A DNA stretch of 64,000 nt from Thalia democratica (lineage: Eukaryota), in assembly GCA_965202585.1 (NCBI GenBank), contig OZ241826.1:27962001-28026000 (forward strand), given 5' to 3'. Every line of letters begins with the position of its first letter. The first letter of the stretch is position 1. A model generated the notes under the pieces. It had not been told where the DNA came from, searched no databases, and saw nothing but the letters and a program-made list of their open reading frames with translations. The position numbers and the translations under genes are program-made. Positions 1,667 to 58,882 of the stretch are shown one piece after another.

Positions 1667-3400
1667 ATGTACTCAAACGAAGAATATTTAGATCAGACAA
1701 TCACACAGTTTTCCGGTCCTAAGAACTACTTGCGCCGCCTGTGCGAAGAAGAAAAGCAAAAGACGAAAACTAAAATAGAAAACATGATCGAACAATTTGA
1801 TGCGAGAAAAGAAAAATTGGTGAAACACGCCGTAAATTTGTTTGAGTGCGACACTTCGACATCTAAAAAATCTTTTTTAAAAGGTTTCAATCATGAGCTT
1901 CAGTTGTTGGAAAGCGACGATCCGGATTACGATCTGTTGAAAGGATCGCTCGGTTTGAGCACTGAACTAAACCAATTAAAAAAGTACTCGAACAAAAACG
2001 TCGCTCTCAAGATTTACAGGGTCAAATCAAAAGTGGAACGTTGCAGATGTCCGAGCTTGCTGCTTCTGCACGGCACCAAAGAAAGTAACGTCGAGGGAAT
2101 TTTGAAAGAAGGACTGAGGCCTTCGTCGTCCGGCAAACATGGTCCCGGTATTTATTTGACGAACAGCTTTGAAATTGCTCACCGATACGGAGGTTGCTAC
2201 GCGATAGACGATGGGAACCTTAAAGACTTGACGTACTTGTTTGTTAGCAAAGTAAAAAAGACGCTGGCAAGTTCAAGTTGTCTTTGTGGAGACTGTAAAG
2301 ATGACCGCTCTGTTAAAAATCGCAAACCGTTATTCGGTAAGAAGACAACTTCTACTGTGTTTGTAAAGTCGTCGTTACAATGTCTCGACTCCAGTTTTAG
2401 TTACGAGCCCGTTTTAAAGGTTTTTGATGGAAACTCCTATTCCTACAAACAAGTTGAATTCGAAGATTCTTCAGCCCGCAAGTTTGATAGCAACGAAAAC
2501 AAAATTCTTTCGGGCACGTTTCAAGTGGACAATGACGAAAAAAGAATAGCTGTTGCTCACCATGACCTAGTAACTCTAGCGTACCTGGTAAGAATCGAAA
2601 TAAAACAAAGCGCACGCGTGCTTTCAAAACACATTTTGTACGATAAACTCTACCAAAGGAAGTTTTTAAAAGAGCTGCCTGTTTCAGGTTCGCAAAAAGC
2701 CGTGTTGATCGAAAATAGTCCTGCCACTTTCGAAGACTGCTCCATGAACACTTTTGTTGCCGAGCTTGAAAAAGAAATAAGCGCCAATCAACAGGCAGAA
2801 GTTGAACATGCGAAGCATCAGTTTGAACGCAAAGTTAAATCTTTCATGCGGCAACTGTTGTTCGATACGAGCAGCATATCGGAAATCAAATGTTGCGCCA
2901 TGTACAAAGCGGAGCTGCTGCATGCTTCAGATCCAGATCATCAGTTTGTGCTCAAGTCGATGAACAAAATGAGCCCGAACGCGGCAATTCAGAAAATTTT
3001 CAGGATAAACCCCTTAGACGGATTCGAGGTTGAAAAGATACGCGGAAGCTTTCTTTACCTGCGAGGAGTCAAGTCAAACGAGCTGCCAAAAGTTCTGGCG
3101 AGAGGCTACCCGGCGAGCCAAGAGGATTGGTTGGAGCAGTGCGAATGTAGAGCTGGTCGCTGCTTATGCTACGCGTCCACCAGTTTGAACAGGGAACTTT
3201 TGAGAGGAACAAGCCTCTGCGTCACGAACGGACAAGTCGGAAAGCTTTCGTTTGTCTTCGTGTCAAGCGACGGAAAAGACGCGGAAAATGAAGCTTTTCC
3301 CAACTCCGACACCAGAAGATGCTGTTTTAAAAGCAACGGAGTAGAAACCATGCTGATCGGTATGATTCCGGCTTATTTAATTGTTTTTAGCGTTCAATAG
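1667..3400 (+). CDS. PARP-like ADP-ribosyltransferase, 577 aa, copy 1 (intact): N-terminal helical segment, ART domain, coiled linker, degenerate second ART domain
   Basis: Uninterrupted 577-aa ORF. PARP signature LLLHGTKESNVEGILKEGLRPSSSGKHGPGIYLTNSFEIAHRYG (HGT His, GIY Tyr, downstream Tyr), preceded by KIYRV and followed by a terminal strand VTLAYLV. Markedly GC-richer than the flanks. AATAAA 7 nt after the stop. Confidence 0.88.
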   Translation: MYSNEEYLDQTITQFSGPKNYLRRLCEEEKQKTKTKIENMIEQFDARKEKLVKHAVNLFECDTSTSKKSFLKGFNHELQLLESDDPDYDLLKGSLGLSTELNQLKKYSNKNVALKIYRVKSKVERCRCPSLLLLHGTKESNVEGILKEGLRPSSSGKHGPGIYLTNSFEIAHRYGGCYAIDDGNLKDLTYLFVSKVKKTLASSSCLCGDCKDDRSVKNRKPLFGKKTTSTVFVKSSLQCLDSSFSYEPVLKVFDGNSYSYKQVEFEDSSARKFDSNENKILSGTFQVDNDEKRIAVAHHDLVTLAYLVRIEIKQSARVLSKHILYDKLYQRKFLKELPVSGSQKAVLIENSPATFEDCSMNTFVAELEKEISANQQAEVEHAKHQFERKVKSFMRQLLFDTSSISEIKCCAMYKAELLHASDPDHQFVLKSMNKMSPNAAIQKIFRINPLDGFEVEKIRGSFLYLRGVKSNELPKVLARGYPASQEDWLEQCECRAGRCLCYASTSLNRELLRGTSLCVTNGQVGKLSFVFVSSDGKDAENEAFPNSDTRRCCFKSNGVETMLIGMIPAYLIVFSVQ

Positions 3401-6400
3401 ACTTTGAATAAACTATCTTTTTGTAATTAAAACAATAGCAATTTGTTTTTAAGCATACACAAGCTACTATTGTTTTAATTTTTCGGAAAGTCCTTTAAAC
3501 TTTTTTCTACAGTTTTATTTTAACAAATATTTATTCATAATAGTAACTAACATCTACTTTTCTTAAAGTTACAAATTTGTTTGAAAAAGATAAAAAGTTA
3601 TCTTACTCCTCAACAAACAAGTTTTCGATACTTTTTACAGATATATCATTACATCAACCGGCTTACTTGACAGATTTTAGCTCTTAGTAGATTTAAGCAA
3701 AAAAAAATCACTGCTGTCTTTTTATAGTTGAGTCGATCAACTAAAAAACATCAGCGAAAATCTACAGAGTCTACGCCTCTGATTAAATAACACCCGTGAT
3801 GAGCTTTAACATTTCTTGGGGGTTGTATTTGTATCAAAATACTTAAATCTTTTAATTTAACTTTGTTAGTATAAGTTCGTATGTGTATGCGTTGTCTTGA
3901 AAGTGTTAATTTGTTTACGATTAGTCTCATACAAAATTAATTCAGCTTAAAAATAGATCAGACTAATTTTTTATTAAAATTTGTAATTTTTTTTTACAAT
4001 ATTATAAGTTTTGTAATACCATAAAAAAGTAATAGTTAACAAATTAAAACTCTCCAATTTAATCAATAAACGTTTTCAGAGTCGATTTAAGCAAAATTTT
4101 AATTAAAAAAATTTGTTAGCTTTTAATATATAATTATCTTTTATGTCATATATCAAAACTTTTAGGTTGACATTACCACGACGCAGGCTCATTCAAAATC
4201 ATTACAAAGGAACTGTGATTTAAATTATGTTTTTGCCAGATTACGTTATTTTGAGTTTTCTATTCTTTTTTGGTTGAAAACCTTTTTAAAGGTATTTATG
4301 TAATTCAGCATCTACGTCACGTCACTGAAGATTAAACTCATGTAACATTATTATTATGCTTACACGTGATACTTAAACAAGGCAAAAACTTAAACAAAAA
4401 CAATTATACAAATTTTCTTTCGTCAACGGTCATAGTTTTTCTTAACATTACTGTACAAAAAAGGCTAATATTTTTTTTTTGGGACTAGATTAAATACAAA
4501 TTCGTTTCATTTAACTATGTATATTCATTAGTCGAAAATTCTTTACAGAGAGAAACATAATTTATTCCCTCTTTTTAAAATCAAAATATTTTGAAAAAAT
4601 TTTTCCATACATTAACTCCTTAATTAGTGCAATAAGTTAAGGACATTAGGAGCTCAGAGTGGTTACTGCTCCTTTGTAGTAAAACTATTATAGTTGTGTT
4701 TTATATATGTAAATTATAATAATCTTTTGTAAACCATCAAGAATTTTTTTCTTTTGAAAATGGAAAATAAATAAAAGGTTTCTAAAAAACGTTATAGTAA
4801 AGATGATATAGTGCACAATGTATACTGCTAATATAGTGTTTACCTCATTATACAAAAAGACTAAGTTAAAATTAAGTAAACTTATAAAATGTAATTAATT
4901 AGTTATTTACGTGAAAAGTGAACAAATCAAAGTTTGTAGTTGTACAGTAGCAGTAGAGTTAGAAAATTAACCACTTTTAAAAGCAAATTAGTTCGTTAAA
5001 CATTTTTTTTAATTAAGATTTTTCTCTAAGAATTTTATTTTATAACATTTATCTTAATATATGTAAAAAAAAAACTTAAAGATTAAAATTTAATTCGTTG
5101 CTAAGAACAAAAATTTTAGATTTTATAGCTTTTCTACTAAATAAATAAAGAATTATACAACCGCACAAATAAATTTAATAAACTTAATTTGACTGCTAGT
5201 ATCTGCAGATGCATTCTTTATATAAGTAACAATGTTTTACACCAGTTAAATTTAATAAGCCGTAAAATTTTGCAGGCATAAAAAAGTTTAAAACTTTACA
5301 AATTTTCTGCACTTTTTACTATGTATTGAAACAAATTATTTTAACTGATAAGAAATATAAAATAACTAAATAATGACAACAAGAAGTAATTTTATAGGAT
5401 TTAATTCTATTATTGATCTAATGTTATTTTAAAGAAGCATAATAAAAGTAGATATTAGATTAAATTTAAAAATTTTGCTAAGTAAAGTTTGTTTTCTGTC
5501 ACTGTTTAAATGAGATAACAAACTGTTTTAAATATTCTACAGGTTGGGAAATTTAGCTGATACTAATTATGAAATAGTTTGTTGCAATTTTAGAAAATAT
5601 TCAGTGAACAGATTTAGTGACACTGTTGGATAATATGACAACCATATATTGATCTAAAAGTATTAGAACAATTATAAAGTTTGTTAAACTAAAAAAGTCA
5701 ATAAACAGTTTAAACAGATTATAATAACAGCTATTAGTAACTTATAACATTTTAACTAGTTTTTGAATTGTTTATTTATTTTACATATTAAACAAAACTA
5801 TTATTTTTAATAGCTTCTAATAAGTTTGCGACGGTGATGTAATGTATATATAAGGGGTTTAACAGAATCAAATTTACTAAATAATATTTTTTTACCGCTG
5901 AAAGGCGCTACTAGTTGCTTTATATAACCACAAACCATAATTAAAACTAGTTTGTTGGTTTTTAAACTTAACAAAAAACTTTTTAGATCATTACTTAGTA
6001 AAACAAATCTTTATCATTTAGTTACAGTTATACTCTGTTTAGCAATTTTAGTATATGTTTAGTCATGATACTGGGTAAGCAAATTAAAAAAAAAATATTA
6101 TGTAAACTTGTACTTTCGCAGAAGTTCATAGTTATATATAAAACTTAATTTAAACTTAAGGTAAGAAGTAATCTAATATTAAATTTTAGATAAATAGTAG
6201 TTTAACACAAGTAAAATAAAACTGAACACTGAATAACTTCTAGATACATAAAAGTAATCTACAATCCTTTAAAAGTTAGTTAATCAATAACTTCTAGGTG
6301 TTGACTTAAAACTAAGTAAGCAACTCAATATTGTTTAGTTAAATACTATAAAGTTAATTACTAAAATTTTAAACATAAACTAGAATTAAGTTAACTTGCT

Positions 6401-8824: not shown

Positions 8825-10551
8825 CTATTGAACGCTTAAAACAACTAAATAAGCCGGAATCAGGCCGATTAAATGATGCATGAAACTTTCTCTGGTTTTA
8901 AAACAGCATCCTCTGGTGTCGGAGTTGGGAAAAGTTTCCTCATCCGCGCTTTTGCAATCGCACGCCACGAAGACAAACGACAGCTTTTCGACTTGTCCGT
9001 TCGAGACGCAGTGGCTTAACCCAAGTCCAAGTTCAAAGTCCCAGCTGGTGGACGTGTAGCAGGAACAGCCGTCGACTTCACACTCGCACTGTTTCAATAA
9101 ATCCTCGAGACTTGCCAGGTAGCCTCTCACCAGAACGTTTGGCACTTGGTAGGACTTGGCTCCTTGCAGGTAGAGCACGCCTCCGTGTATCGTTTTGTCT
9201 TCGTCAACTGGGTTGATCCTGAAAATTTGCAGGACTGCCGCGTTAGGAATCATTCCGGTCATCGACCCGACCACAAACTGACGATCTGGATCTGAAGCTT
9301 GCAGCAGCTCCGCTTTGTAGTTGGCACAGTTGTCGGCTTCTAATATGCTGCTCGTGTCAAACAACAGTTGCCTCATGAAAGAGTTCACTTTGCGTTCAAA
9401 CTGATGCTTCGCATGTTCAACTTCTGCCTGCTAATTGGCGCTTATCTCTTTTTCAAGCTCGGCAACAAAAGTGATCATAGAGCAGTCTTCGGAACTGGCA
9501 TGACTGTTTTCGATCAACGTGTCTTTTGGCAGATCCGAAATTGGCAGGTTTTTTGAAAAGTTAGTTTTGCAGAGTTCGCAGTACAAAATGTGTTTCGCAA
9601 GCTCGCGTGCGCTTTGTTTTGTTTCGATTTCTATAAGGTATTCGAGAGTTACTAGATCATGGTGAGCTACAATTATTCTTTTTACGTCATCACTCGATTG
9701 AAACGTGCCCGAAAGAATTTTGTTTCCTTCGCTGTCGAACTTGCAAGCTGAAGAATCTTCGAATTCAACTTGTTTGTTGGAATATGTTCCATGTAAACTT
9801 TTAAAACGGGGTCGTAACTAAAACTGGAGTCATGAATTGGATACGACGACTTTACAAACACAGTCGAAGTTGTCTTCTTACCGAATAAGTGTTCGCAAGT
9901 TTTAACAGACCGGTCATCTTTACACTCTCCACAAAGACAACCTGAACTTTCCGGCGTCTTTTTCACTTTGCTAACAAAAAAGAACGTGAAGTCTTTGGCT
10001 TTCCCATCGTCATCCACGTAGTTTTGACCGTAACGTTGAGCAATTTCAAAGCTGTTCGTCAAATAAATGCCGGGGCCCAGTCTGCCTGAAGATGAAGGCC
10101 TCAGTCCTTCTTTCAAGATTCCCTCGACGTTGCTCCCTTTGGTGCCGTGCAGAAGCAGCAAGCTCGGACATCTGCAGCGTTCCACATTCGATTTGACCCT
10201 GTAAATCCTGAGAGCGACGTTATTGTCCGAGTACTTTTTTAATTCGTTCGTTTCACCGCTCAAATCGAGCGATTCTCTCAACAGACTGTAATCCGGATCG
10301 TCGCTTTCCAACAACTGAAGCTCGTACTTGGAAACCTTGGAAAGAGATTTTTTTCAAACTGTACTTCTGCATTCAAACATCTTAACAGCTTCTTCCACAA
10401 ATTCTTCTTTTTCTGCATCGCATTCTTCGACCATTTCTTTGATTTCAGCTTTCGTCTTTTGCTTTTCTTCTTCGCAAAGACTGCGCAAATAATTTTGAGG
10501 ACCAGGAAACTGAGAGATTATCTGATCTAAATATTCTTCGTTTAAGTACAT
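8825..10551 (-). pseudogene. PARP-like copy 2, disrupted
   Basis: Colinear with copy 1 from MYLNEEYLDQ to IPAYLVVLSVQ. In-frame TGA at 10354-10356, a ~4-nt deletion near 9790 (VLKVYMEHIP instead of VLKVFDGNSY), and an in-frame TAG at 9431-9433 where other copies have Q/K. Confidence 0.9.
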
Positions 10552-15881: not shown

Positions 15882-16176
15882 ATACGAACAGTTCAGACGA
15901 TTGTAAAATAATTTATAAATTAGTTACGACTATAAGAAAGAAATGCATATTAGACTATAATTTAAACAACAGGTGTGAAAATTATTTTTTCTAAAATATA
16001 TTTTAAGTAATATGAGTAATGGCATGTACTTGAAAAAAGCAAAATTAGATGTTTTTTAAGGAACAATTCAGATTGTTTTAATATTTTCGATACATTAGTT
16101 ACAGAAAGAGTAGTATTAAACTGTTCATATTATAACAGATCTGCAAAATTTTAAAATTTTTAAAAACGCTAAAACA

Positions 16177-16404
16177 CATTTTCAGTTTGATTTCTCAGAC
16201 ATTTAACCACAAATCCAGAATTTTTCTTTGCAATGTATCCACCTATTAATTCAAGTTACCCAAAATTATACAAAATCCAGTGAATAATAAGACAATGTGG
16301 TTTTATTTGATTTTGTATAATTCAAGGTAACATAAATTAGTTATTGTATGCAGTGCAAGAAACATTTCTTGATTTGTGGTTGTCTGAGCATCAAACTAAA
16401 AATG
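16177..16404. repeat. Foldback/MITE-like imperfect palindrome (~230 bp)
   Basis: cattttcagtttgatttctcagacatttaaccacaaatc pairs with gatttgtggttgtctgagcatcaaactaaaaatg. Inner arms aattatacaaaatc / gattttgtataatt also pair. Confidence 0.7.
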
Positions 16405-19210
16405 AATTTAGTTATTTTTAAAAAATCTTAAGAAGTTTTTTATTAAAATTTATAAGAATAATTATTCCTAAAATGAAAGAAAATATTCCATTTTATTTCA
16501 ATAAATTATTTTATGCTCACAAAAGGTCTAAATTAAAAGCCAATATTTACTATAGTAACAAAAATATTGTAATCCCCTCATGTATGGCCTCAACTATATT
16601 CAAATAATATTATAAGTTTAATAACCAAGAAAAGCAGGATAAACGAGATTTAAAGTCAATCTTAAAAAGTTTAAAACACCCAAGCAATAAAAATTATCAT
16701 TTCCATATGTTTGTCTGTAATGAACCTGCTGCGTTTACCTGCATTTCATATTTTGAAGATTTATATGCAGTTTTTGTAAATAAAATATTTATACTTAAGT
16801 TTGTGTAATCAAGCGCAATAAATCTCTCTAGTTACATTTGTTATTTTGATTGTGGTTTATAAGACATAGCAACTGAGAATTATACCTATATTATTGACTT
16901 AAAACTGCACAAAAAACTTATTAATGAAGTTTTATTGTTCAAGTAAAAGAAAATTATTAACGAAACATGATTTGAAATCTACGCTAGATACTTTAGATGA
17001 CGATGAGAAAAAAGTCTTGGAAATTTTTATTAGCAGCTTTTTAAGAAACCTTGATAGAAGAGCCATATATTTTTTTAATTTTTTCAAAGGAGCACTTTTG
17101 ACGAAATGTTCGGGAAACCCTGATTTAGATATTTTTTACTGTAATTATTACATCTTTTAGTGAAGAAGCAATAATTACATTTACCTTCTGCTGTTTTCTA
17201 AAGCCTTTAAAGTTTAACTATAACCAAAAGTAATAGAGAGTTATGAAGCCAACATGTATCGAAGGTTAATTTGAACAAAGTACCTTAGGGAGAAAAAATG
17301 AGTTTAAAAAGTGTTAACAGAGTTTTAGTCCTAATAAGTAACCTTTAGTTGGTGAAAAGTTTTAAGCTCTTAAAGTCGAAATAAAGCTGACAAATTTTAT
17401 ACTACAAAATTAAACTAGAACTGTCGTAACTTAAATCAAAAGAGTCAGAATTGAAATGTTAACTTTTAATTTCACTACGTCTAAGTATTACTAACAAAGT
17501 TTATGTCCAAAGAGCTAAAAAAGAACTGACAAATTTAAAGTCAACAGAAACAAAAAAGAACTTAAACAATTTTATACCATAAGTCACTGTAGAACATGTA
17601 AAAAAATAATAAAATAGAATAAACAAAATAGTAGTCTAATCAATTAACACAAGTATTGAAAATGTATAAGTTACAAGTAATCACAAAAAATGGTGACCAT
17701 TTTTAAGTCAAAGTTAGTCATATTAAATTTATGCAAGGTACTTAAATCTTAATAGCATAATAAAAACGATAAAAGTTATTAGTTGATAAGACAGCAATAA
17801 CAAGTAACACCCTAAGATATTCAGGAATTTCTGTCAAGGAAGTTAGCATGAAATTTAAATGTTATTGTTTTGTGTTTTTTATACTTATCTGTTGCAAATG
17901 CTGCAATGTTTATAGTAGGTTGTAACACACATTTGATACTATTTTTGAATTTAAAATAAAAATTTTATGTAAAAAGATAAGTTTTTCTGGTTAAACACAA
18001 TTAGTTTTTTTTTATTATCAACAAAAAAAAAATTAGAAATAAATTATAGCTAAATTTTTGAATTTTGTATACAATAAAATTTTTTTTGAATAACATTAGT
18101 CAATTTGATTTAGTCAGATTATAAGCAATCTTAATATTTTAAAATAATCCAGAACTGTGGAAGCAGAAAGAAATTGACTGTAAGATTTTCTTGTTATTTT
18201 AAAAGTGTCTTTGGTTAATTTTTTCACATACAAATTTCTTTGTTTGGTTTTGTAACAAAAAATGTTTGTTTTTTGTGTTAATAACTAATTGACATTTTTC
18301 ATTGACTTTGTTGATTGGTTATTTACAGAAATCTTATTAATTAAGCAGCTTTCTAAAGTTGTTATTACTACTTTAAAAACTAATGTTCTATTTCAAATTT
18401 CTGCAGTAAGTTTCTGAAGAATTGCGGTGAAAATACATTAAAACTTTTGTGGAAAAACATTGACTGTTCTTTATGAAGGTATACAGTATAGTAAACTTAT
18501 GTTTTTAATGTTAAAAAAAAAACATTAGTATTAGATTTTACCCCAAGTTATATTTTCATATGTGTTACTTTTTTTCCTTCTTTATAAAGGAAGGGTAGTG
18601 TTTATTTTCCAACAAAAAGGAAGAGGAGAAATAGAGTGATGATTCTCTTCAAAAAAAATGAAGAGGAAGTTGAACTCGAAATAAAATTTCATTTGATAAC
18701 TGTTTAAATTTAAAACTAGGTTTTTAAGCTGGAGCTCTTGTTCTTCCAAGCGTTTAAGTGAATGCTTGCAAGATCACGTGTTTTACTGATACAAGTTTGC
18801 ATTTGCATACAATAGCCATATATTAATATTGTTTTATTGTAGAGAAATCATTCTAGACACCCTAACTGCTGCTAAAACTTTGTTCAGTAAAAGTTTGTGT
18901 TTTTTTATTCAGAGTAATTTTTTTTTCTAAACAATATTGTTTTCTATATACAGTAAACGATTTATAATTTAATTATACATTTTAAAGTATCCTTATAAAT
19001 TTGATATAAATAAAATTTTTATACTCCAGTGAAAGTTAATTTCTAAAGTTTTTAATTTTCATAAATTTTTAAGTGTTTGTATCTGTTTTTGTGAAAGATA
19101 TGTTTATTTATGACATGCCAAGTTTTATATATAGTATCACTAATTAACTTTAGTATAGCTTTAAGTTTCATAAATTTAATATTCTATATATTGTAGTTAA
19201 TAGCGTGGGT

Positions 19211-20160
19211 CTGGGTTGCCATTTTGCCTGTAAAACTGGTAAAACCCGGAATTTTACAATTTAGGCAAAAAAAAATCTGGAATTTGAGAAATTTTGAAAA
19301 ATCCTTGAATTTTAACAATAATTACTGTAAAAGCCTTGAATTTTAACAATTTTGATGTTACTAAGTAGTAAATTTCGATTTGTCTCTGAAAATATAACAA
19401 ATAGATAAAAAGGTTTTGTCATCCTCAAGATTTTTTAAATATATTAAATGTAGCTTTAAAGTTTATTTTCAATGTATTTTTTTTATTTAACACAGTTTCT
19501 TACCTTAAACTTAACTTTTAAAAAAAAAACCCAAAATGTGTACTTTTAGAGTCTTCGAAAAGTTTGGAAAACCTGGAAAAATTGCGACAGGGTTGCTACA
19601 ACGTCAGGAAATAAAGGAAAGTCAGGGAAAAATAGGGGGTTTTGAAGAAAATTCTGGAAAAGTCCGGAGTATTGAAAAAAAATTTTAAAAGTCTGATTTT
19701 GTCAGTTTAAATTTACAAAATTCCAAATTTTTTAAAGCCTTCAAGTGGTAATAAAATAGTTAAAAATCCTTTAAAGTAAGATTTAAGTTTCAAATTTTTC
19801 CTAGAAATTGACAAATTTTTTTAGTTCTCATTACACTCATTAGGTATAAATTAATAAAATATCCTTTATTTAATTATCATTATATTATAATTAATATTGT
19901 TATTAAATATCCTAAAATTGTTATTTTTACCTGTATTAAAAAAACATTAAAAGCTTCATATTATTTCAAGTGTTAGATTATGTATTTTAGAATAAGTTTG
20001 AATTAAGAGTATCATTTAGAAAAGTCATGAAATGTCAGGAAGAAATGGAGGTTTTGAAAAAAAGTCAAGAAATGTCAAAAAAATTGACAAAAATAAAAGA
20101 AAGTCAGAATTTATTATTATAAATTTACAAAATTCTTTACTTTACAAATCCTTCAAATAG
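19211..20160 (+). mobile_element. Internally deleted copy of the CAGGGTTGCCA composite (also at 54702-55650)
   Basis: ctgggttgccattttgcctg at 19211, cagggttgctacaacgtcagg at ~19589, and repeated aaagtcagg motifs. Confidence 0.6.
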
Positions 20161-21677
20161 TAATACAACAATAAATAGTAATAGTGAATTAACTATACAA
20201 ATAAACTGTGAGCTGAGATTACTGTTTAAGTAAACTTATAATAAAAAATATATTTTTAAAGTAAACATAAAAGTATGTACTTTTTTTACATAACTTCAAA
20301 TGTTTTCTGCTTCTTTTAAATAATTTTTTAGGCTTAAATGTAATTTTAAGCTAAGGATTTTTTTACTCGATAAATGCGTAGTGTCTAGTGTTACATTATG
20401 TTATTTTTGTTTTATAACTTACAACAAATAAATTAAGTTTACTGAACAAATAATTTTTTGTGCATCATATCTTTGAACCAAACATTTTGAGCGTTTTTAT
20501 TTGTATTTCAAAAAATTTTGTATGATTGTATTAACTTTTTTAAATTTTTTTATGTTATATAATACTATATAAATTTTTTTTTTATGTTATTTAAAAATAT
20601 ATAATAGTTAAATATAAACTTGACTAAGTATTTCAATCAAAATATTATGTGAAAAATTAAAATTAAAAAATTTAACACTATATACTAATAATACTTAAAA
20701 TCCTTCAGCTCACAACAATTTTACTTTTAACTCATTAAAAAACATTGTGAGCTGTTTTCCTAATGTTTTCATGTTTGCTACAAATATTGTTTTTCTCGTT
20801 TTATGAATTAAATCTAACTTGCATTTTAAATTGTAATTTTCAAATATTTTCCACTGAATTTTTTTTAAGTTATAGGATTAAACTGTATTTTAATTTTTAT
20901 GTTGTTAGAAAAGGTTTTCGGAACATCGTGAATAATATTTTTAAAGTAAACAGAAAACTATACTAACTTTCTTTTCATTCATTTTATTAGTTGTTTTATT
21001 TTTTTGATTTCAAAGTTCTAGTTTATACAATAATAGGTTTTATTTACTCGTAAGAAATTTTAAAAGCATGTGGTCGGATAACAAAATTTACAAGTTTTTT
21101 TAGTTTTATTATCACTCTTACTACTAACCCTTACCCTTGATTGGTAACGTTGTTTTTTTTATAAACAAATAATAATTATTTTTTTAATTAGTTTCATTTC
21201 TACTTCCGTGCAAAAATTACTTTTCGTACAGAAGTGTCTTAGTGCAAAATTGTCCCATCGTGCATATTTGACCCGTTTCCCCTTAGATCAAACACTTAAT
21301 GTAATTTTTTATCATTTTAAAAACATTATATAAATATAAAAGCAATAAGTAAGTTTAGTATTAAAAGCATTGTCTGTACATTAACTAATTACTTGGTTAG
21401 AAAAAATGAACTATTTACATGAGTTAGATAGATTTACATTTAAGTGTAAAAAGCAGTCAAAAAATATTTATACACAGTTCTTCTAGAATCCAAACTATTT
21501 ATAGTGGTTTTAGAAGTTTAAAATTATTTTATACCTATCTGAGATAAGTATTTATATATATATTAATTTTTGTTATTACTGTGTATTCGTTTATATAACA
21601 TTACTTACATATAACAAGAAAAAATTAGAAAGTTTTTTAAAACTAGAATTTATTACAGATTATTTAGTAAAAACATC

Positions 21678-23392
21678 ATGTACTCAAACGAAGAATGTTT
21701 AGATAAGACAATCTCGCAGTTTCCTGGTCCTCAGAACTATTTGCGCCATCTGTGCGAAAAAGAAAAGCAAATGACAAGTTTTAAAATCGAAGAAATGGTT
21801 AAATATTTTGAAACGGAAAAAGAAGAATTGGTGGAAGCAGCTGTCGATTTGTTTGAATGCGGATCTTCGGCTTTAAAAAAAGCTCTTTCAAAGGATTCCA
21901 AGCACGAGCTTCAACTGTTAGAAAGCGACGATCCGGATTACGATCTGTTGAAAGCATCTCTCGGTTTGAGTCAATTGAAAAAGTACTCAAATGAAAACGT
22001 CGCTCTTAGGATTTACAGGGTCAAATCAAATGTTGAACGTTGCGGATGTCCGAGCTTGCTGCTTCTGCATGGCACCAAAGGGAACAACGTCGAGGGAATC
22101 TTGAGAGAAGGACTGAGGCCTTCGTCGTCCGGCAAACATGGCCCCGGCATTTATTTGACAAACAGCTTTAAAATTGCTCACAATTACGGTCAAAACTACG
22201 TGGAAGATGATGGGATCGTAAAAGATTTGACGTACTTGTTTGTTAGCAAAGTGAAAGAGACGCTTGAAAGTTCAAGTTGTCTTTGTGGAGAGTGTAAAGA
22301 AGATCAGTATATTACTCACAAATCGTTATTCGGTAAGAAGACAACTTCAACTAAGTTTATAAACTCGTCGTTTCTCAATCTTGACTCCAGTTTGAGTTAC
22401 GAGCCCGTTTTAAAAGTTTTTGATGGAAATTTGCATTCCAACAAACAAGTTCAATTGGAAGACTTTCAAGCCCGAGAGTTTGACAACGACGGAAGCAGAA
22501 TTCTTTCGGGCACTTTTCAAGTAAGTGAAGTCGATAAAAAAATATTTGTGGCTCACCACGATCTAGTAACTCTCGAATACTTTATAGAAATCGAAGTAAA
22601 ACAAAGTGCACGCAAGCTTGCGAAACATATTTTGTACGACGAACTCTGCCAGTTTAAGTTTTCAATAGACCCGCAAATTTCAGATCTGCCAAAAGACACG
22701 TTGATCGAAAACAGTCATGTCAGTTCTGAAGACTGCTCCATGAACGCTTTTGTTGCTGAGCTCAAAAAAGAAATAAGCGCCAATAAGCAGGCAGAAGTTG
22801 AATATGCAAAGCATCAGTTTGAACGCAAAGTGAACTCATTCATGCAGCAACTGTTGTTTAAAACGAGCAGCATATCGGAAACCAATAGTTGCCTTAAGTA
22901 CAAAGCGGAGCTGCTGCAAGCTTCAGATCCAGATCACCAGTTTGTGCTCGGGTCGATTACCGGAATGAGCCCGAACGCGGCAATCCAGAAAATTTTCAGG
23001 ATCAACCCAGTCGACGAAAGCAAAAAGATGCACGGAGGCTTGCTCTACCTACGGTTTTCAAATCCCACGACGTGCCAAAAGTTCTGGCAAGAGGCTACCA
23101 GGCAAGCGACGAGGATGTGTTCGAACAATGCGAATGTGGACCCAGCTGCTATTCTAGCTACGCATCCGACGTCTTGAAATGTGAACTTTTACTTGGGTTA
23201 AGCCACTGCGTCACGAACGGACAGGTCGAAAAGCTGTCGTTTGTCTTAGTGGTTAGGGATGGAAAACGCGCAGACAATGTAGCTTTTCTCAACTCTGACA
23301 CTAGAGGGTGCTGTTTTAAAACCGGGTTGCAAATAATACATCAGCCGATTGGCCTTATTCCGGCTTATTTAGTTGTTTTTAGCGTTCAATAG
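21678..23392 (+). pseudogene. PARP-like copy 3: 499-aa ORF (21678-23177) with intact first ART domain; 1-nt deletion truncates the second domain
   Basis: ORF 21678-23177 matches copy 1 up to GGLLYLR. At ~23055 cggttttcaaatcc lacks one base relative to cggggagtcaagtcc of copy 4. The homologous C-terminus continues in the 23072-23392 frame. Could still be an expressed truncated gene. Confidence 0.85.
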
Positions 23393-29091: not shown

Positions 29092-29330
29092 CTAATAGTG
29101 TTTGGAATCTATACTTTCTGCATAGTTGTAAAATAATTTTTTGGTATTTGATTCATATCCAGATTCACTGTTTTCAGAAGGTTCGTAGCAGCCGGAGTTT
29201 TGTTCGTACATTTCATAATAATTATTTGGATTATGCTCGTATGTGTATTTTCTTCTGTAGTTGCTTGGTCTCCTCCTATACTGATGATGGTTTCTTAGTG
29301 TACAATAACCATTAATTTTATTGAAGCTAA
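29092..29330 (-). other. Out-of-frame continuation resembling a Y-box protein C-terminal tail
   Basis: An overlapping frame reads RNHHQYRRRPSNYRRKY...SENSESGYES right after the CSD ORF stop. An imperfect 18-nt tandem repeat sits at the frame junction. Confidence 0.45.
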
Positions 29331-30652: not shown

Positions 30653-30679
30653 ACTCGTATTATACAGAGGGTCTACATT

Positions 30680-35842: not shown

Positions 35843-37571
35843 CTATTGAACGCTAAAAACAATAAAATAAGCCGGAGTAAGGCCGATCGGCTGATGCATG
35901 AAATCCGTTCCGGTATTAAAACAGCACCCTCTAGTGTCGGAGTTGAGAAAAGTTACATTGTCCGCGCTTTTGCCATCCCTTACCACGAAGACAAACGACT
36001 GCTTTTCTACTTGTCTGTTTGTGACGCAGTGGCTCATTCCTTTTGAAAGTTCCCTGCTCAAGCTGGTGGACGCGTTGCAGTAACAAATGTGTCTGCACTC
36101 GCACTGCTCCAATAAATCCTCGTAGCTCGCAGGGTAGCCTCTCGCCAGAACCTTCGGCACCTCGTAGGACTTGACTCCCCGCAGGCAGAGCAAGCCTCCG
36201 CGCATCTTTTTGCTTTCGTCAACGGGGTTGATCCTAAAAATATTCAGGATTGTCGGGTGGCCGTTCGGGTTCATTCCAGTCATCGAACCGAGCACAAACT
36301 GATAATCTGGATCTGAAGTTTGCAGCAGCTTCGCTTTGTAGTTGGAACAGTTGTTGGTTTCCGATATGCTGCTCGTATTAAACAACAGTTGCCGCATGAA
36401 AGAGTTCACTTTGCGTTCAAAGTCAAGCTTCGCATGTTCAACTTCTGCCTGCTGATTGGCACTTATTTCTTTTTCGAGCTCAGTAACAAAAGTGTTCATA
36501 GAGCAGTCTTCGGAACTGACATGACTGTTTTCGATCAACGTGTCTTTTGGAGGATCTGAAATTTGCGGGTCGATTGTAAAATTGGTCTGATTGAGTTCGC
36601 CGTACAAAATAAGTTTCGCAAGCTCACGTGCGTTTTGTTTTACTTCGATTTCTATCAAGTATTCGAGAGTTACTAGATCGTGGTGAGCTACAATTATTCT
36701 TTCTTCGTCATCACCTACTTGAAACGTGCCCGAAAGAATTTTGTTTCCGTCGCTATCGAACTTGCAGGCTGAAGAGTTTTCGAGTTTAACTTGTTTGTTG
36801 GAATATGAGTTTCCATCGAAAACCTTTAAAACGGGCTCGTAACCAAAACTGGAGTCAAGACACGGGTATAAAGATTTTATAAACGAAGTTGAAGTTGTAT
36901 TCTTATCAAATAATAGTTCACAAGTTTTAACAGACTGACCATCTTTACACTCTCCACAAAGACAACCTGAACCTACTAGTGTCTCTTTCACTTTGCTTAC
37001 AAACAAGTACGTCAAGTCTTTGGCGTTCCCATGGTCTTTCGCGTAGTTTTGACCGTAACGATGAGCAATTTCAAAGCTATTCGTCAAATAAATGCCAGGG
37101 CCGAGTCTGCCGGAAGACGAAGGCCTTAGTCCTTCTTTTAAGATTCCCTCGACGTTCTTTCCTTTGGTGCCGTGCAGAAGCAGCAAGCTCGGACATCTGC
37201 AACATTCCACTTTTGACTTGACTCTGTAAATCCTGAGAGCGACGTTATTGTTCGAGTACTTTTTCATTTGGTTCGTTTCAGCGCTCAAACCGAGCGATCC
37301 TTTCAACAGATCGTAATCCGGATCGTCGCTTTCCAATAGTTGAAGCTCGTGCTTGGAATCCTTTGAAAGTGATTTTTTAAAAGCCGAAGTGTTGCATTTA
37401 AACAACTTTATAGCACCTTTCACCAATTGTTCTTTTATCCATTCAAAATTTTTAACCTTGTTTTCAATTTTAGTTTTAGTGTTTTGCTTTTCTTCATCGC
37501 ACAGGCGGATAGATCTGAGGACCAGGAAACTGCGTGATTGTTTGATCTAAATACTTTTCGTTTGAGTACAT
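35843..37571 (-). pseudogene. PARP-like copy 4: 5-nt deletion near codon 20, remainder open (527 aa)
   Basis: ATG at 37571 (MYSNEKYLDQ...). At ~37510 cag atc tat c cgc ctg lacks 5 nt relative to aac tat ttg cgc cgc ctg. The downstream frame 35843-37426 is open with both domains. The ORF-track start is a non-ATG codon. Confidence 0.85.
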
Positions 37572-51293: not shown

Positions 51294-51667
51294 GTGCAAA
51301 AGGGTGTGCAAAATTTCTTTAATGTTTTTAAGTACTTTGAGTAATGGCCTGTACTTTAAAAAAGCAAAATTAGATGTTTTTTTAAGGAACTTTTTGTTTT
51401 AAAATTTTCGATACATTAGTTTCCAAAGGAGATGTATAAAATTGTTCATATTATAACAGATCTGCGAAATTCGAACAGTTTTTATAAAGAGTTGTATGTT
51501 TATAAGCAATTTACCTTATTTTATACCATTAGCCTGTTATTTAGACCTTTTGTAAACTTAAAATACTTTTTTTTAAAGAAATATAAATTTTATAAAACTT
51601 TTTGTAAACAATGATTTAAATAAATTTTTAGTAAATTTTTGTTATAATTTAAAAAAATACTGAAACA

Positions 51668-51894
51668 CATTTTCAGTTTGATTTCTCAGATATTTAACCA
51701 CAAATCCAGAATTGTTCCTTGCAATGTATCCACCTATTAGTTTAAGTTACCTAAAATTATACAAAATTCAGTGAATAATAAGACAATGTGGTTTTACTTT
51801 ATTTTGTATGTTTCAAGGTAACTTAAATTAGTTGTTGTATACATTGCAAGAAACATTTCTGGATTTGTGGTTGTCTGAGCATCAAACTGAAAAT
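51668..51894. repeat. Second copy of the foldback palindrome
   Basis: Homologous to 16177-16404. Confidence 0.7.
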
Positions 51895-54701
51895 AAATTT
51901 TATTTAATTAAAAAAATCTTAAGATTTTTTTTTTCAAATTATTAGAATAGTTATACCTCAAATGTTTGAAAATATTCCATTTTATTTTAAAATATTATTT
52001 TATGCTCAAAAAAGGTCTAAATTAAAGGCCAGTGTTTACTATAGTAACAAAAGTATTACAGTCCCCTTCGAGTATGGCCTCAACTATATTCAAATGATAC
52101 TTATAAGTTTAATAACCAAGAAAAGCAGGATAAAAGAGATTTTTAGTCAATCTTTAAAAGTTTTAAACACCTAAGCAATTAAAAATATCATTTCCATATG
52201 TTTATCTGTAATGAACCTGCTGCGTTTACCTTTTCATATTTTGAAGATTTAATATGCAGTTTTCGTAATTAAAATGTATATACTTGTTTTTGTGTAATCA
52301 AGTACAATAAATCTCTCTAGTTACATTTATTATTTTGATTGTGGTAGATAAGACCTAGCAACTGAGAATTTTACCTATATTATTGACTTAAAACAGCACA
52401 AAAAACTTATGAATGAAGTTTTATTGTTCAAGTAAAAGAAAATTATTAACGAAACATGATTTGAAATCTACGCTAGATACCTTAGATGACGATGAGATAA
52501 AAGTCTTGGAAATTTTTATTAGTAGCTTTTTAAGAAACCTTGATAGAAGAGCCATATATTTTTTTAATTTTTTCAAAGGAGCACTTTTGACGAAATGTTC
52601 GGCAAACCCTGATTTAGATATTTTTTACTGTAAAAATTACATCTTTTAGTGAAGAAGCAATAATTACATTTAACTTCTGCTGTTTTCTAAAGCCTTTAAA
52701 GTTTAAGCATAACCAAAAGTAATAGAGAGTTATGAAGCCAACATGTATCGAAGGTTAATTTGAACAAAGTACCTTAGGGAGAAAAAATGAGTTTAAAAAG
52801 TGTTAACAGAGTTTTAGCCCTAATAAGTAACCTAAAGTTGGTGAAAAGTTTTAAGCTCTTAAAGTCAAAATAAAGCTGATAAATTCTATTCTACAAAACT
52901 AAATTAGAACTGTCATAACTTAAATCAAAAGAGTCAGAATTGAAATGTTAACTTTTAATTTCACTAAGTCTAAATATTACTAACAAAGTTTAAGTCCAAA
53001 GAGCTAAAAAAGAACTGACAAATTTAAAGTCAACAGAAACAAAAAAGAACTTAAACAATTTTAGACCATATGTCACTGTAGAAAATGTAAAAAAATAATA
53101 AAATAGAATAAACAAAATGGTAGTCTAATCAATTAACACAAGTATTGAAAATGTAAAAGTTACAAGTAATCACAAAAAATGGTGACCATTTTTAAGTCAA
53201 AGTTAGTCATATTAAATTTATGCAAGGTACTTAAATCTTAATAGCATAATAAAAACGATAAAAGTTATTAGTTGATAAGACAGCAATAACAAGTAACACC
53301 CTGAGATATTTCGGAATTTCTGTCAAGGAAGTTAGCATGAAATTTAAATGTTATTGTTTTGTGTTTTTTATACTTATCTGTTTCAAATGCTGCAATGTTT
53401 ATAGTAGGTTGTAACACACATTTGATACTATTTTTGAAATTAAAATGAAAAGTTTATGTAAAAAGATAAGTTTTTCTGGTTAAACACAATTAATTTTTTT
53501 TTTATTATCAACAAAAAAAAAAAATTAGAAATAAACTATAGCTAAATTTTTGAATTTTGTATACAATAAAAATTTTTTTGAATAACATTAGTCAATTTGA
53601 TTTAGTCAGATTATAAGCAATCTTAATATTTTAAAATAAACCAGAACTGTGGAAGCAGAAAGAAATTGACTGTAAGCTTTTCTTATTTTTTCAAAAGTGT
53701 CTTTGGTTAATTTGTTCGCATACAAATTTCTTTGTTTGGTTTTGTAACAAAAAATGTTTGTTTTTAGTGTTAATAACTAATTGACATTTTTCATTGACTT
53801 TGTTGATTGGTTATTTACAGAAATCTTATTAATTAAGCAGCTTTCTAAAGTGGTTATTACTACTTTAAAAACTAATGTTTATTTCAAATTTCTGCAGTAA
53901 GTTTCTGAAGAATTGCGGTGAAAATACATTAAAACTTTTGTGGAAAAACATTGACTGTTCTTTATGAAGGTATACAGTATAGTAAACTTATGTTTTTAAT
54001 GTTAAAAAAAAACATTAGTATTAGATTTTACCCCAAGTTATATTTTCATATGTGTTACTTTTTTTCCTTCTTTATAAAGGAAGGGTTGTGTTTATTTTCC
54101 AACAAAAAGGAAGAGAAGAAATAGAGTGATGATTCTCTTCAAAAAAAATGAAGAGGAAGTTGAACTGGAAATAAAATTTCATTTGATAACTGTTTAAATT
54201 TAAAAATAGGTTTTTAAGCTGGAGCTCTTGTTCTTCCAAGCGTTTAAGTGAATGCTTGCAAGATCACGTGTTTTACTGATGCAAGTTTGCATTTGCATAC
54301 AATAGCCATATATTAATATTGTTTTATTGTAGAGAAATCATTCTAGACACCCTAACTGCTGCTAAAACTTTCTTCAGTAAAAGTTTGTGTTTTTTTATTC
54401 AGAGTAATTTTTTTTTTCTAAACAATATTGATTTCTATATACAGTAAACGATTTATAATTTAATTATACATTTTAAAGTATCCTTATAAATTTGATATAA
54501 ATAAAATTTTTATACTCCAGTGAAAATTATTTTCTAAAGTTTTTAATTTCTATAAATTTTTAAGTGTTTGTATCTGTTTTTGTGAAAGATATGTTTATTT
54601 ATGACATGCCAAGTTTTATATATAGTAGCACTAATTAACTTTAGTATAGCTTTAAGTTTCATAAATTTAATATTCTATATATTGTAGTTAATAGCGTGGG
54701 T

Positions 54702-55650
54702 CTGGGTTGCCATTTTGCCTCTAAAACTGGTAAAACCCGGAATTTTACAATTTAGGCAAAAAAAAATCTGGAATTTGAGAAATTTTGAAAAATCCTTGAA
54801 TTTTAACAATGATTACTGAAAAAGCCTTGAATTTTAACAATTTTGATGTTACTAAGTAGTAAATTTCGATTTGTCTCTGAAAATATAACAAATAGATAAA
54901 AAGGTTTTGTCATCCTCAAGATTTTTTAAATATATTAAATGTAGCTTTAAAGTTTATTTTCAATGTATTTTTTTTTATTTAACACAGTTTCTTACCTTAA
55001 ACTTAACTTAAAAAAAAAAAACTTAAAATGTGTACTTTTAGAATCTTCGAAAAGTTTGGAAAACCTGGAAAAATTGCGACAGGGTTGCTACAACGTCAGG
55101 AAATAAAAGAAAGTCAGGGAAAAATAGGGGGTTTTGAAGAAAATTCTGGAAAAGTCCGGAGTATTGAAAAAATTTTTTAAAAGTCTGATTTTGTCAGTTT
55201 AAATTTACAAAATTCCAAATTTTTTAAAGCCTTCAAGTGGTAATAAAATAGTTAAAAATCCTTTAAAGTAAGATTTAAGTTTCAAATTTTTCCTAGAAAT
55301 TGACAAATTTTTTTAGTTCTCATTACACTCATCAGGTATAAATTAATAAAATATCCTTTATCTAATTATCATTATATCATAATTAATATTGTTATTAAAT
55401 ATCCTAAAATTGTTATTTTTACCTGTATTAAAAAAACATTAAAAGCTTCATATTATTTCAAGTGTTAGATTATGTACTTTAGAATAAGTTTGAATTAAGA
55501 GTATCATTTAGAAAAGTCATGAAATGTCAGGAAGAAATGGAGGTTTTGAAAAAAAGTCAAGAAATGTCAAAAAAATTGACAAAAATAAAAGAAAGTCAGA
55601 ATTTATTATTATAAATTTACCAAATTCTTTACTTTACAAATCCTTCAAAT
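54702..55650 (+). mobile_element. Copy of the 19211-20160 element within the segmental duplication
   Basis: Near-identical to 19211-20160. Confidence 0.6.
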
Positions 55651-57167
55651 AGTAATACAACAATAAAAAGTAATAGTGAATTAACTATACAAATAAACTG
55701 TGAGCTGAGATTACTGTTTAAGTAAACTTATAATAAATAATATAGTTTTAAAGTAAACATAAAAGTATGTACTTTTTTTACATAACTTCAAATATTTTCT
55801 GCTTCTTTTAGATAATTTTTTAGGCTTAAATGTAATTTTAAGCTAAGGATTTTTTTACTCGATAAATGCGTAGTGTCTAGTGTTACATTATGTTATTTTT
55901 GTTTTATAACTTACAACAAATAAATTAAGTTTACTGAACAAATAATTTTTTGTGCATCATATCTTTGAACCAAACATTTTGAGCGTTTTTATTTGTATTT
56001 CAAAAAATTTTGTATGATTGTATTAACTTTTTTAAACTTTTTTATGTTATATAATACTATATAAATTTTTTTTATGTTATTTAAAAATATTTAATAGTTA
56101 AATATAAACTTGACTAAGTATTTCAATCAAAATATTATGTGAAAAATAAAAATTAAAAAATTTAACACTATATACTAATATCACTTAAAATCCTTCAGCT
56201 CACAACAATTTTACTTTTAACTCATTAAAAAACATTGTGAGCTGTTTTCCTAATGTTTTCATGTTTGCTACAAATATTGTTTTTCTCGTTTTATGAATTA
56301 AATCTAACTTGCATTTTAAATTGTAATTTTCAAATATTTTCCACTGAATTTTTTTTAAGTTATAGGATTAAACTGTATTTTAATTTTTATGTTGTTAGAA
56401 AAGGTTTTCGGAACATCGTGAATAATATTTTTAAAGTAAACAGAAAACTATGCTAATTTTCTTTTCATTCATTTTATTAGTTGTTTTATTTTTTTGATTT
56501 CAAAGTTCTAGTTTATACAATAATAGGTTTTATTTACTCGTAAGAAATTTTAAAAGCATGTTGTCGGATAACAAAATTTACAAGTTTTTTTAGTTTTATT
56601 ATCACTCTTACTACTAACCCTTACCCTTGATTGGTAACGTTGTTTTTTTTATAAACAAATAATTATTATTTTTTTAATTAGTTTCATTTCTACTTCCGTG
56701 CAAAAATTACTTTTCGTACAGAAGTGTCTTAGTGCAAAATTGTACCATCGTGCATATTTGACCCGTTTCCCCTTAGATCAAACACTTAATGTAATTTTTT
56801 ATCATTTTAAAAACATTATATAAATATAAAAGCAATAAGTAAGTTTAGTATTAAAAGCATTGTCTGTACATTAACTAATTACTTGGTTAGAAAAAATGAA
56901 CTATTTACATGAGTTAGATAGATTTACATTTAAGTGTAAAAAGCAGTCAAAGAATATTTATACACAGTTCTTCTAGAACCCAAACTATTTATAGTGGTTT
57001 TAAAAGTTTAAAATTATTTTATACCTATCTGAGATAAGTATTTATATATATATTTATTTTTGTTATTACTGTGTATTCGTTTATATAACATTACTTACAT
57101 ATAACAAGAAAAAATTAGAAAGTTTTTTAAAATTAGAATTTATTACAGATTATTTAGTAAAAACATC

Positions 57168-58882
57168 ATGTACTCAAACGAAGAATGTTTAGATAAGACA
57201 ATCTCGCAGTTTCCTGGTCCTCAGAACTATTTGCGCCGTCTGTGCGAAAAAGAAAAGCAAATGACAAATTTTAAAATCGAAGAAATGGTTAAATATTTTG
57301 AAACGGAAAAAGAAGAATTGGTGGAAGCAGCTGTCGATTTGTTTGAATGCGGATCTTGGGCTTTAAAAAAAGCTCTTTCAAAGGATTCCAAGCACGAGCT
57401 TCAACTGTTAGAAAGCGACGATCCGGATTACGATCTGTTGAAAGCATCTCTCGGTTTGAGTCAATTGAAAAAGTACTCAAATGAAAACGTCGCTCTTAGG
57501 ATTTACAGGGTCAAATCAAATGTTGAACGTTGCGGATGTCCGAGCTTGCTGCTTCTGCATGGCACCAAAGGGAACAACGTCGAGGGAATCTTGAGAGAAG
57601 GACTGAGGCCTTCGTCGTCCGGCAAACATGGCCCCGGCATTTATTTGACAAACAGCTTTAAAATTGCTCACAATTACGGTCAAAACTACGTGGAAGACGA
57701 TGGGATCGTAAAAGATTTGACGTACTTGTTTGTTAGCAAAGTGAAAGAGACGCTTGAAAGTTCAAGTTGTCTTTGTGGAGAGTGTAAAGAAGATCAGTAT
57801 ATTACTCACAAATCGTTATTCGGTAAGAAGACAACTTCAACTAAGTTTATAAACTCGTCGTTTCTCAATCTTGACTCCAGTTTGAGTTACGAGCCCGTTT
57901 TAAAAGTTTTTGATGGAAATTTGCATTCCAACAAACAAGTTCAATTGGAAGACTTTCAAGCCCGAGAGTTTGACAACGACGGAAGCAGAATTCTTTCGGG
58001 CACTTTTCAAGTAAGTGAAGTCGATAAAAAAATATTTGTGGCTCACCACGATCTAGTAACTCTCGAATACTTTATAGAAATCGAAGTAAAACAAAGTGCA
58101 CGCAAGCTTGCGAAACATATTTTGTACGACGAACTCTGCCAGTTCAAGTTTTCAATAGACCCGCAAATTTCAGATCTGCCAAAAGACACGTTGATCGAAA
58201 ACAGTCATGTCAGTTCCGAAGACTGCTCTATAAACACTTTTGTTGCTGAGCTCGAAAAAGAAATAAGCGCCAATAAGCAGGCAGAAGTTGAATATGCAAA
58301 GCATCAGTTTGAACGCAAAGTGAACTCATTCATGCAGCAACTGTTGTTTGAAACGAGCAGCATACTGGAAACCAATAGTTGCCTTAAGTACAAAGCGGAG
58401 CTGCTGCAAGCTTCAGATCCAGATCACCAGTTTGTGCTCGGGTCGATTACCGGAATGAGCCCGAACGCGGCAATCCAGAAAATTTTCAGGATCAACCCAG
58501 TCGACGAAAGCAAAAAGATGCACGGAGGCTTGCTCTACCTACGGTTTTCAAATCCCACGACGTGCCAAAAGTTCTGGCAAGAGGCTACCAGGCAAGCGAC
58601 GAGGATGTGTTCGAACAATGCGAATGTGGACCCAGCTGCTATTCTAGCTACGCATCCGACGTCTTGAAATGTGAACTTTTACTTGGGTTAAGCCACTGCG
58701 TCACGAACGGACAGGTCGAAAAGCTGTCGTTTGTCTTAGTGGTTAGGGATGGAAAACGCGCAGACAATGTAGCTTTTCTCAACTCTGACACTAGAGGGTG
58801 CTGTTTTAAAACCGGGTTGCAAATAATACATCAGCCGATTGGCCTTATTCCGGCTTATTTAGTTGTTTTTAGCGTTCAATAG
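57168..58882 (+). pseudogene. PARP-like copy 5: near-identical to copy 3, same frameshift
   Basis: 499-aa ORF 57168-58667 plus 58562-58882 frame. Same 1-nt deletion at ~58545. Only a few amino-acid differences from copy 3 (e.g. GSW vs GSS, RRL vs RHL). Confidence 0.85.

Follow-up and report, generated by a model that had tools for sequence, protein, structure and literature searches.

A very large family of intron-free, two-domain PARP-like genes in the tunicate Thalia democratica

We analyzed a 64,000-nucleotide stretch of the genome of the tunicate Thalia democratica, here called the window (contig OZ241826.1, C1 below, positions 27,962,001-28,026,000 of an 802-Mb assembly; 27% G+C, no N), which carries a set of PARP-like genes. 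We located the copies with a six-frame list of open reading frames (ORFs) and by tblastn with the 577-amino-acid product of the first gene, copy 1. We found five paralogs in the strand order +, -, +, -, +, and in every one the coding region forms one uninterrupted stretch. This bears out the places and strands given in the original prediction, which was made from the letters of this DNA and described five alternating paralogs, each with a single large coding exon. It had also called the locus an array of five with only one intact member. Both statements hold inside the window but not beyond it: the window covers only part of a 1.2-Mb cluster (C1:27.2-28.4 Mb), and the genome holds at least 38 intact full-length copies of the same subfamily.

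The copies other than copy 1 are damaged, as had been predicted, and we located the nonsense codons and frameshifts in copies 2 to 5 (Table 1). In copy 2 these are a stop at about codon 66, a 4-nt gap that shifts the frame at about codon 250, and a second stop at about codon 375. None of the frameshift gaps among the window copies lies in a homopolymer run, and assembly slips are therefore an unlikely cause. Copies 3 and 5 sit on the two arms of a 10-kb duplication, which are 95.7% identical over 9978 bp by self-megablast. DNA identity among the remaining window copies is about 79 to 82%.

Pfam found the PARP catalytic domain (PF00644) alone in the window copies, at 28 to 32 bits against a cut-off of 26.7. 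It found no WWE, macro, zinc-finger, BRCT, ankyrin, WGR, or PARP_reg domain in these copies, which confirms the earlier statement that the usual PARP accessory domains (all of these except PARP_reg, which it did not list) are missing. The protein looks cytosolic and lacks a signal peptide. In the AlphaFold2 (AF2) model of copy 1 (predicted template modeling score, 0.68; predicted local distance difference test score [pLDDT] in Table 1), there are two repeats, each a long helix followed by an ADP-ribosyltransferase (ART) fold, and residues 200-245 and 338-354 are disordered. When we aligned the two halves of the protein with hhalign, they matched with a probability of 97.6% (E = 2.7e-12, 155 columns). 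This match indicates that the two-domain protein arose by internal duplication, so that the two-domain architecture already proposed now has an origin.

Domain 1 resembles the catalytic domains of known PARPs. VIA-align superposed it on the catalytic domain of PARP3 with a Z score of 16.7 and a root mean square deviation of 2.8 Å over 172 residues (23% identity), with PARP2 and PARP1 close behind. A Foldseek search of the PDB gave PARP1 and PARP2 at a probability of 1.0, and a search of the PDB with the family profile gave PARP3 at an E value of 2e-7 and PARP15 at 3e-4. Across a same-family alignment of 23 sequences, reaching down to 30% identity, H135, G136, T137, G159-P160-G161, Y163, K186, G283-T284-F285, H298, and Y306 are invariant, and Y174 is nearly so. 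We regard the family, its fold, and these motifs as established.

Measured against the H-Y-E clade (PARP/ARTD), domain 1 has the ART fold, the NAD-binding His on strand 1, and the Tyr on strand 2, but it lacks the catalytic Glu on strand 5. This Glu is required for poly-ADP-ribosylation. When domain 1 is aligned to single-domain relatives that carry Glu-Tyr-Val, the Glu position is occupied by Ile294 (I, V, F, or T across the family). In a gapless register against what we take to be residues 788-1010 of PARP1, it is occupied by Arg293. No aligned member has an acidic residue at either candidate position. The residues of domain 1 match the pattern of mono-ADP-ribosyltransferases (mono-ARTs) or of inactive PARPs. 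Past strand 5 there is a His-His-Asp motif that only this family has. Domain 1 also carries, in its disordered loop, a Cys-Leu-Cys-Gly-x-Cys motif (window 2279-2296, copy 1 residues 205-210), which is kept in the paralogs of this genome and is absent from distant homologs.

Domain 2 has kept the fold and lost the NAD-binding residues. Its residues 398-577 matched the catalytic domain of PARP12 by Foldseek (E = 4e-5), and the catalytic domain of PARP16 was matched as well. The copies of this genome have R or Q at the His position, where several distant homologs have H; the Tyr position shows no conservation, and no lineage keeps the His and the Tyr together. A four-cysteine insert (Cys...Cys...Cys-x-Cys) is conserved, and three of its cysteines are significantly constrained. 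Domain 2 probably has no catalytic function and serves in regulation or in the recognition of targets. We also considered an ART of the R-S-E (cholera-toxin-like) type: copy 1 carries Arg466 and an STS motif in this domain, but across the family the Arg varies (R, Q, H, K, and Y) and there is no conserved ExE, and we rejected this candidate. The language-model neighbors of the protein are R-S-E ART toxins, at scores of 0.85 to 0.88; a score under 0.9 counts as weak according to the tool itself.

Table 1. Positions in the window of the five PARP-like copies and of the features associated with them
Feature	Position	Strand	Description	Basis
Copy 1 (c1)	1667-3400	+	Intact, 577 aa	ORF list; Pfam PARP, 28 bits; AF2 pLDDT, 75.5
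ART domain 1 of copy 1 (aa 60-315)	1844..2611	+	His135, Tyr163, and Tyr174 present; Glu position Ile294 or Arg293	VIA-align, alignments
Second repeat of copy 1 (aa 357-577)	2735..3397	+	Long helix and degenerate pseudo-ART with Cys-x-Cys...Cys-x-Cys insert	hhalign, Foldseek
5' flank	1596..1666	+	Conserved; T-rich TTTAAAT-like element and TTAYAG about 20 nt before ATG	Alignments of five copies and 21 paralogs
3' flank	3401..3950	+	Conserved; AATAAA about 10 nt past the stop codon in 5/5 window copies	Alignment
Copy 2 (c2)	8825-10551	-	Pseudogene; two stop codons and one frameshift	tblastn, translations
Copy 3 (c3)	21678-23392	+	One frameshift (1-nt gap) at about codons 466-468	tblastn, translations
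Copy 4 (c4)	35843-37571	-	5-nt gap at about codons 21-24, a frameshift; rest of frame open	tblastn, translations
Copy 5 (c5)	57168-58882	+	Duplicate of copy 3; identical 1-nt gap at about codons 466-468	tblastn, translations
Segmental duplication, arm 1 (with copy 3)	16151-26103	not assigned		Self-megablast
Segmental duplication, arm 2 (with copy 5)	51642-61567	not assigned		Self-megablast

With the full-length protein as the query, the genome gave 77 scored matches, of which about 65 lie at C1:27.2-28.4 Mb and the others in smaller groups on C1, C4, and C9. About 38 of the 77 are full-length matches without stops, and the remaining half or so are broken. From this subfamily we recovered 37 intact ORFs of 566 to 598 amino acids. 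Domain 2 alone as the query gave 150 scored matches among 516 candidates. About 90 of these belong to the subfamily of the window genes, and the rest belong to other subfamilies, which are 36 to 45% identical and have open frames of 570 to 685 amino acids. Such two-domain subfamilies are sited on C1 (91.7-94.8 Mb), C2, C6, C7, C8, C9, and C10. A metagenome homolog (P0005) matched at least 70 genome loci at 39 to 53% identity, and its best genome match was only 51 to 53% identical. In a dense array at C1:92.76-92.99 Mb, another two-domain subfamily is present in at least 20 copies, which alternate in orientation, are spaced by about 10 kb, and have 653-amino-acid open frames that are 41 to 42% identical to P0005.

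The genome also contains intron-free, single-domain PARP genes of about 220 to 240 amino acids. We found at least 150 scored loci of this kind among 1049 candidates, most of them open, and many adjoin the two-domain clusters. Thus, the five-gene array is a small part of several hundred PARP-type loci. Examples of the single-domain loci are on contigs L053-L056 and at C1:0.6-1.7 Mb, C2:89.8-98.4 Mb, C6:10.1-11.8 and 74.1-74.7 Mb, and C7:56.2-56.5 Mb. Some are embedded in far longer open frames of up to 1536 amino acids.

In the tree of intact copies, deep subfamilies stand alongside near-identical copies. Near-identical copies, with a synonymous divergence (dS) below 0.03, lie 170 to 320 kb apart within C1:27.2-28.4 Mb, which indicates that part of its growth came from the copying of large blocks. 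The cluster seems to have grown through repeated duplication of blocks of about 200 to 300 kb. Examples of near-identical sets are at 27.214/27.432/27.600 Mb and at 27.316/27.640/27.830/28.086/28.305 Mb on C1. Turnover by birth and death, as originally proposed, is established by these results: about half of the copies are intact and half are broken, and the duplicates are both old and very recent.

The genes are constrained as proteins. Among 21 intact copies, the median pairwise Nei-Gojobori ratio of nonsynonymous to synonymous divergence (dN/dS) was 0.44, with a dS of 0.35. A parsimony count over 37 intact copies gave a tree-wide dN/dS of 0.46 and 116 codons with a significant deficit of replacements. 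The regional values are all below 1, from 0.30 in the core of the first ART domain (ART1) up to 0.75 in the linker and at the end of domain 2. The low regional ratios and the 116 constrained codons together indicate constraint in both domains, although it is looser than in typical conserved genes. The most changeable codons are in domain 2 (496-498, 509-515, and 557-562) and in the first helix. The original prediction was to be given up if no copy were expressed and dN/dS were about 1; the measured ratio is 0.46. It had also called for codon-based tests of positive selection, and here our crude count yielded no convincing sites.

Some 70 to 80 nt upstream of the ATG are common to all aligned copies, and the metagenome homologs have an AG-ending, pyrimidine-rich motif 20 to 37 nt upstream. 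Spliced-leader trans-splicing occurs in tunicates. The TTAYAG-type motif before the ATG could be a splice or spliced-leader (trans-splice) acceptor or part of a compact core promoter. Some sequencing-run contigs fuse window position 1562 to 3742, leaving out the gene unit, with 17 other letters between. Others fuse 3868 back to 1594, tail to head, with 35 to 37 letters between. The unit is therefore also arranged in other ways, either elsewhere in this genome or in related genomes. Apparent transposon ends at 1596 and 3778 proved to be artefacts of using copy 1 as the query: copy 1 has an indel at 3778, and homology of several copies extends more than 1 kb upstream.

The sequencing runs that contain parts of the copy 1 gene carry the label of a marine or seawater metagenome. 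The copy 1 gene has a summed word depth far above that of its flanks, which fits many copies and is silent on transcription. The contig of P0005 (L059) belongs to a JGI record series that presumably holds Tara metatranscriptomes; its 5' end is colinear with genomic DNA, and we did not count it as expression.

A profile search across 1.84 billion representatives gave 930 proteins with an E value below 1e-3, and 98 had a value below 1e-30. About 30 are full-length two-domain proteins. Full-length homologs with two domains, at 30 to 67% identity, are present in Tara Oceans and other marine metagenomes. None of the relatives that we looked up among the two-domain matches has a name; their sources are ENA, JGI, or Logan. 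We also ran the family alignment as a pattern scan against IMG/VR, which turned up no relative. The first named matches of the profile are fish and shark Gig2 proteins. The close relatives are thus all unnamed metagenome proteins, in keeping with the forecast of a lineage-specific, undescribed family.

Two other observations concern the surroundings of these genes. On the minus strand at 29327-30652, within 26105-31317 of the window, a 441-amino-acid ORF carries a cold-shock domain (PF00313, E = 2e-17) at residues 345-413. The COX1 gene of the mitochondrial contig C1833 (L031) yields its canonical 21-residue motif only under genetic code 13, in which AGA and AGG encode Gly. Only tunicates use this code, which makes the host a tunicate, and a pelagic one is likely. 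A fragment of this COX1 matched unnamed marine sequences at 86 to 91% identity and named sequences at no more than 54%. The cellulose synthase domain PF03552 did not turn up in the genome, which says little, since introns would split such a gene and it may be of another GT2 type. In the nuclear genome, decayed COX1 copies are present at C4:56.84-56.94 Mb and on C757.

All of these data taken together suggest a very large, intron-free family of the tunicate lineage that encodes an internally duplicated ART, in which an active mono-ART would be joined to a non-catalytic domain 2 and which would act in genetic conflict. We give this reading a probability of about 0.55. According to this model, an internal duplication of a long helix and a PARP-type ART fold would have produced the protein, and the family would grow and decay by local and block duplication. 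Domain 1 would bind NAD+ and transfer single ADP-ribose units, as do the H-Y-I/L enzymes PARP10, PARP12, PARP14, and PARP15; we expect a mono-ART because the His-Gly-Thr and both Tyr residues are kept and the catalytic Glu is absent. Domain 2 would have lost the His/Tyr pair and gained the four-cysteine insert, and it would regulate or recognize targets. The conflict would most likely be innate defense. Copy number, turnover, and moderately relaxed constraint fit such a role, and the likeness to rapidly evolving vertebrate PARPs (PMC4038475) and to Gig2 (PMC3617106) points the same way.

Several points weigh against this model. Searches of sequencing runs for the copy 1 gene gave no RNA run, and the four runs that we compared to copy 1 gave short, DNA-like contigs only. 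Enzyme activity is presumed from sequence, and an absent catalytic Glu fits an inactive protein as well. The register at the Glu position comes from sequence alignment and aligned ranges rather than from coordinates. Furthermore, the residue that we take to be Ser904 of PARP1 is an invariant Ala in this family. An excess of replacements was nominal in 9 codons only (p < 0.1), which is within chance, and was obtained by crude parsimony counting with no proper substitution model. Finally, tunicates are not known to have an interferon system, so that Gig2 stays an analogy.

One alternative keeps the link to conflict and makes the proteins pseudoenzymes. Both ART domains would then be non-catalytic and would bind or scaffold NAD+, ADP-ribose, or nucleic acid, as do ZAP/PARP13 and TASOR, whose pseudo-PARP domain is a precedent (PMC7532188). 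Domain 1 lacks the catalytic Glu, and no lineage has a complete His/Tyr pair in domain 2, as this alternative would have it. On the other hand, His135, Gly136, Tyr163, and the GPG-Y motif do not vary even in sequences of 30% identity, and dN/dS is lowest in the ART1 core (0.30), as expected of a site that uses NAD. It also counts against this alternative that a number of human PARPs act as mono-ARTs although they lack the Glu, and we think it improbable.

We judge no more favorably the idea that these genes have an ordinary role outside defense that needs dosage or diversity, such as stress or DNA-damage signaling, germline function, or development, and that their number reflects an unstable, repeat-rich region. 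The cluster is indeed rich in retroelements and segmental duplications, our crude count detected no positive selection, and all regions are under purifying selection. However, such a role sits poorly with hundreds of diverged copies in several subfamilies, half of them pseudogenes, and with a dN/dS of about 0.46, which is high for a housekeeping gene. The profile search, moreover, gave no relative among named proteins of other animals.

The genes might instead be selfish, carried by or acting as a mobile or driving element (transposon cargo or a toxin-like driver). ART domains are common as toxin modules, and the very high copy number, the fused run contigs, and the ART toxins among the weak language-model neighbors could all be taken in this way. 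We looked for the marks of a transposable element and found no common sharp termini, no terminal repeats, and no dispersal, although the search for target-site duplications and terminal inverted repeats was not exhaustive. Upstream homology exceeds 1 kb in several copies, the apparent 3' edge is the copy 1 indel, the subfamily is clustered rather than dispersed, and Pfam found no transposase, integrase, or reverse transcriptase domain in the ORF. Again, the IMG/VR scan was negative and the language-model scores were below 0.9. This explanation is poorly supported, and we consider it quite unlikely. Poorly supported too, and very improbable indeed, is the reading that the protein simply belongs, as an orthologue, to one of the known PARP subfamilies (PARP1-16, tankyrase, or Gig2). 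PARP3, PARP2, and PARP1 are the best structural matches and Gig2 the first named sequence match, but identity over the ART fold is 15 to 23%, Pfam scores are at threshold, helical, WGR, WWE, and macro domains are all missing, an ART in tandem with a pseudo-ART occurs in none of the listed PARPs, and the Gig2 match spans about 42 to 80 core residues at 24 to 41 bits per unit, against 33 bits for PARP3.

Humans have 17 PARP genes (PMC4038475). In contrast, this genome has hundreds of PARP-type loci, with a layout of ART and pseudo-ART that no named protein shares. If expressed and enzymatically active, the genes would be among the largest known expansions of ADP-ribosyltransferases in animals. 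Their naturally diverged mono-ARTs and pseudo-ARTs would also make up a library in which target recognition could be studied, and they would offer a view of ADP-ribosylation in the genetic conflicts of an invertebrate chordate without interferon. A bolder version of our model holds that pelagic tunicates have an arsenal of several hundred PARP-type genes, whose two-domain members couple an active mono-ART to a fast-changing pseudo-ART that recognizes pathogen or transposon targets, and that this is a new family of innate effectors in chordates, possibly sister to Gig2. We regard this version as speculative and doubtful.

We compared the family with the known systems that it most resembles. It shares with PARP3, PARP2, and PARP1 (PF00644) the ART fold, the His-Gly-[ST] and Tyr...Tyr NAD motif, and an alignable N-terminal beta strand of the ART. 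It differs in lacking the catalytic Glu as well as any helical regulatory, WGR, or DNA-binding domain, and it adds a 45-residue disordered, Cys-containing loop and the His-His-Asp after strand 5. Pfam found neither PARP_reg nor WGR beside the ART, the arrangement that defines the DNA-dependent PARP1-3 clade. The original prediction would have had to give way to an orthologue of a known subfamily, and what we found was 15 to 23% identity to the best structural matches and no accessory domains. The mono-ART PARPs with H-Y-I/L (PARP7, 10, 11, 12, 14, and 15) likewise keep the His and Tyr and have a hydrophobic or basic residue in place of the Glu. In contrast to them, the window family has no macro, WWE, zinc-finger, or RRM domain, has an extra degenerate ART, is intron-free, and numbers hundreds of copies. 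Two of these enzymes, PARP14 and PARP15, take part in host-virus conflict and evolve rapidly there (PMC4038475). No named PARP has the tandem layout of ART and pseudo-ART.

In sequence, domain 1 is closest to the single-domain PARP genes of the same genome and of marine metagenomes (P0125 and P0129 type), which score 90 to 98 bits against the ART1 profile. These genes are likewise intron-free and very numerous. They differ in having a full-length Pfam PARP match at 57 to 66 bits and, in several members, the catalytic Glu, and they lack the helical N terminus and the pseudo-ART. Domain 2, like the pseudo-PARPs (TASOR DUF3715 and ZAP/PARP13), has an ART fold minus the NAD-binding residues and is probably non-catalytic (PMC7532188). 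It has no sequence kinship to TASOR, and here the pseudo-domain shares one chain with what is probably an active copy of itself.

The Gig2 (GCRV-induced gene 2) proteins of fish and amphibians are interferon-stimulated and PARP-like, are reported from non-amniote vertebrates only, and consist of tandem units that have expanded in tandem (PMC3617106). The window family has the PARP-signature-like N-terminal stretch, and the core motif HGT...GF.PS..G..GPGVY...A..Y is 36 to 43% identical over 42 residues to each unit of one Gig2 protein (P0130). Both groups also have proteins of tandem units and a lineage-specific tandem expansion (PMC3617106). However, the match is confined to the core (hidden Markov model positions 69-154), the Gig2-specific C-terminal part is unaligned by BLASTP and by the ART1 model, and the per-unit score is no better than that of PARP3. 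In addition, Gig2 units (P0113) keep a Glu-Glu-Tyr motif, and the host of the window family is a tunicate, not a vertebrate. These comparisons do not support membership in Gig2 but make it a good analogy and possibly a distant relative, and they raise the question of whether the Gig2 genes of fish arose earlier among chordates than has been reported.

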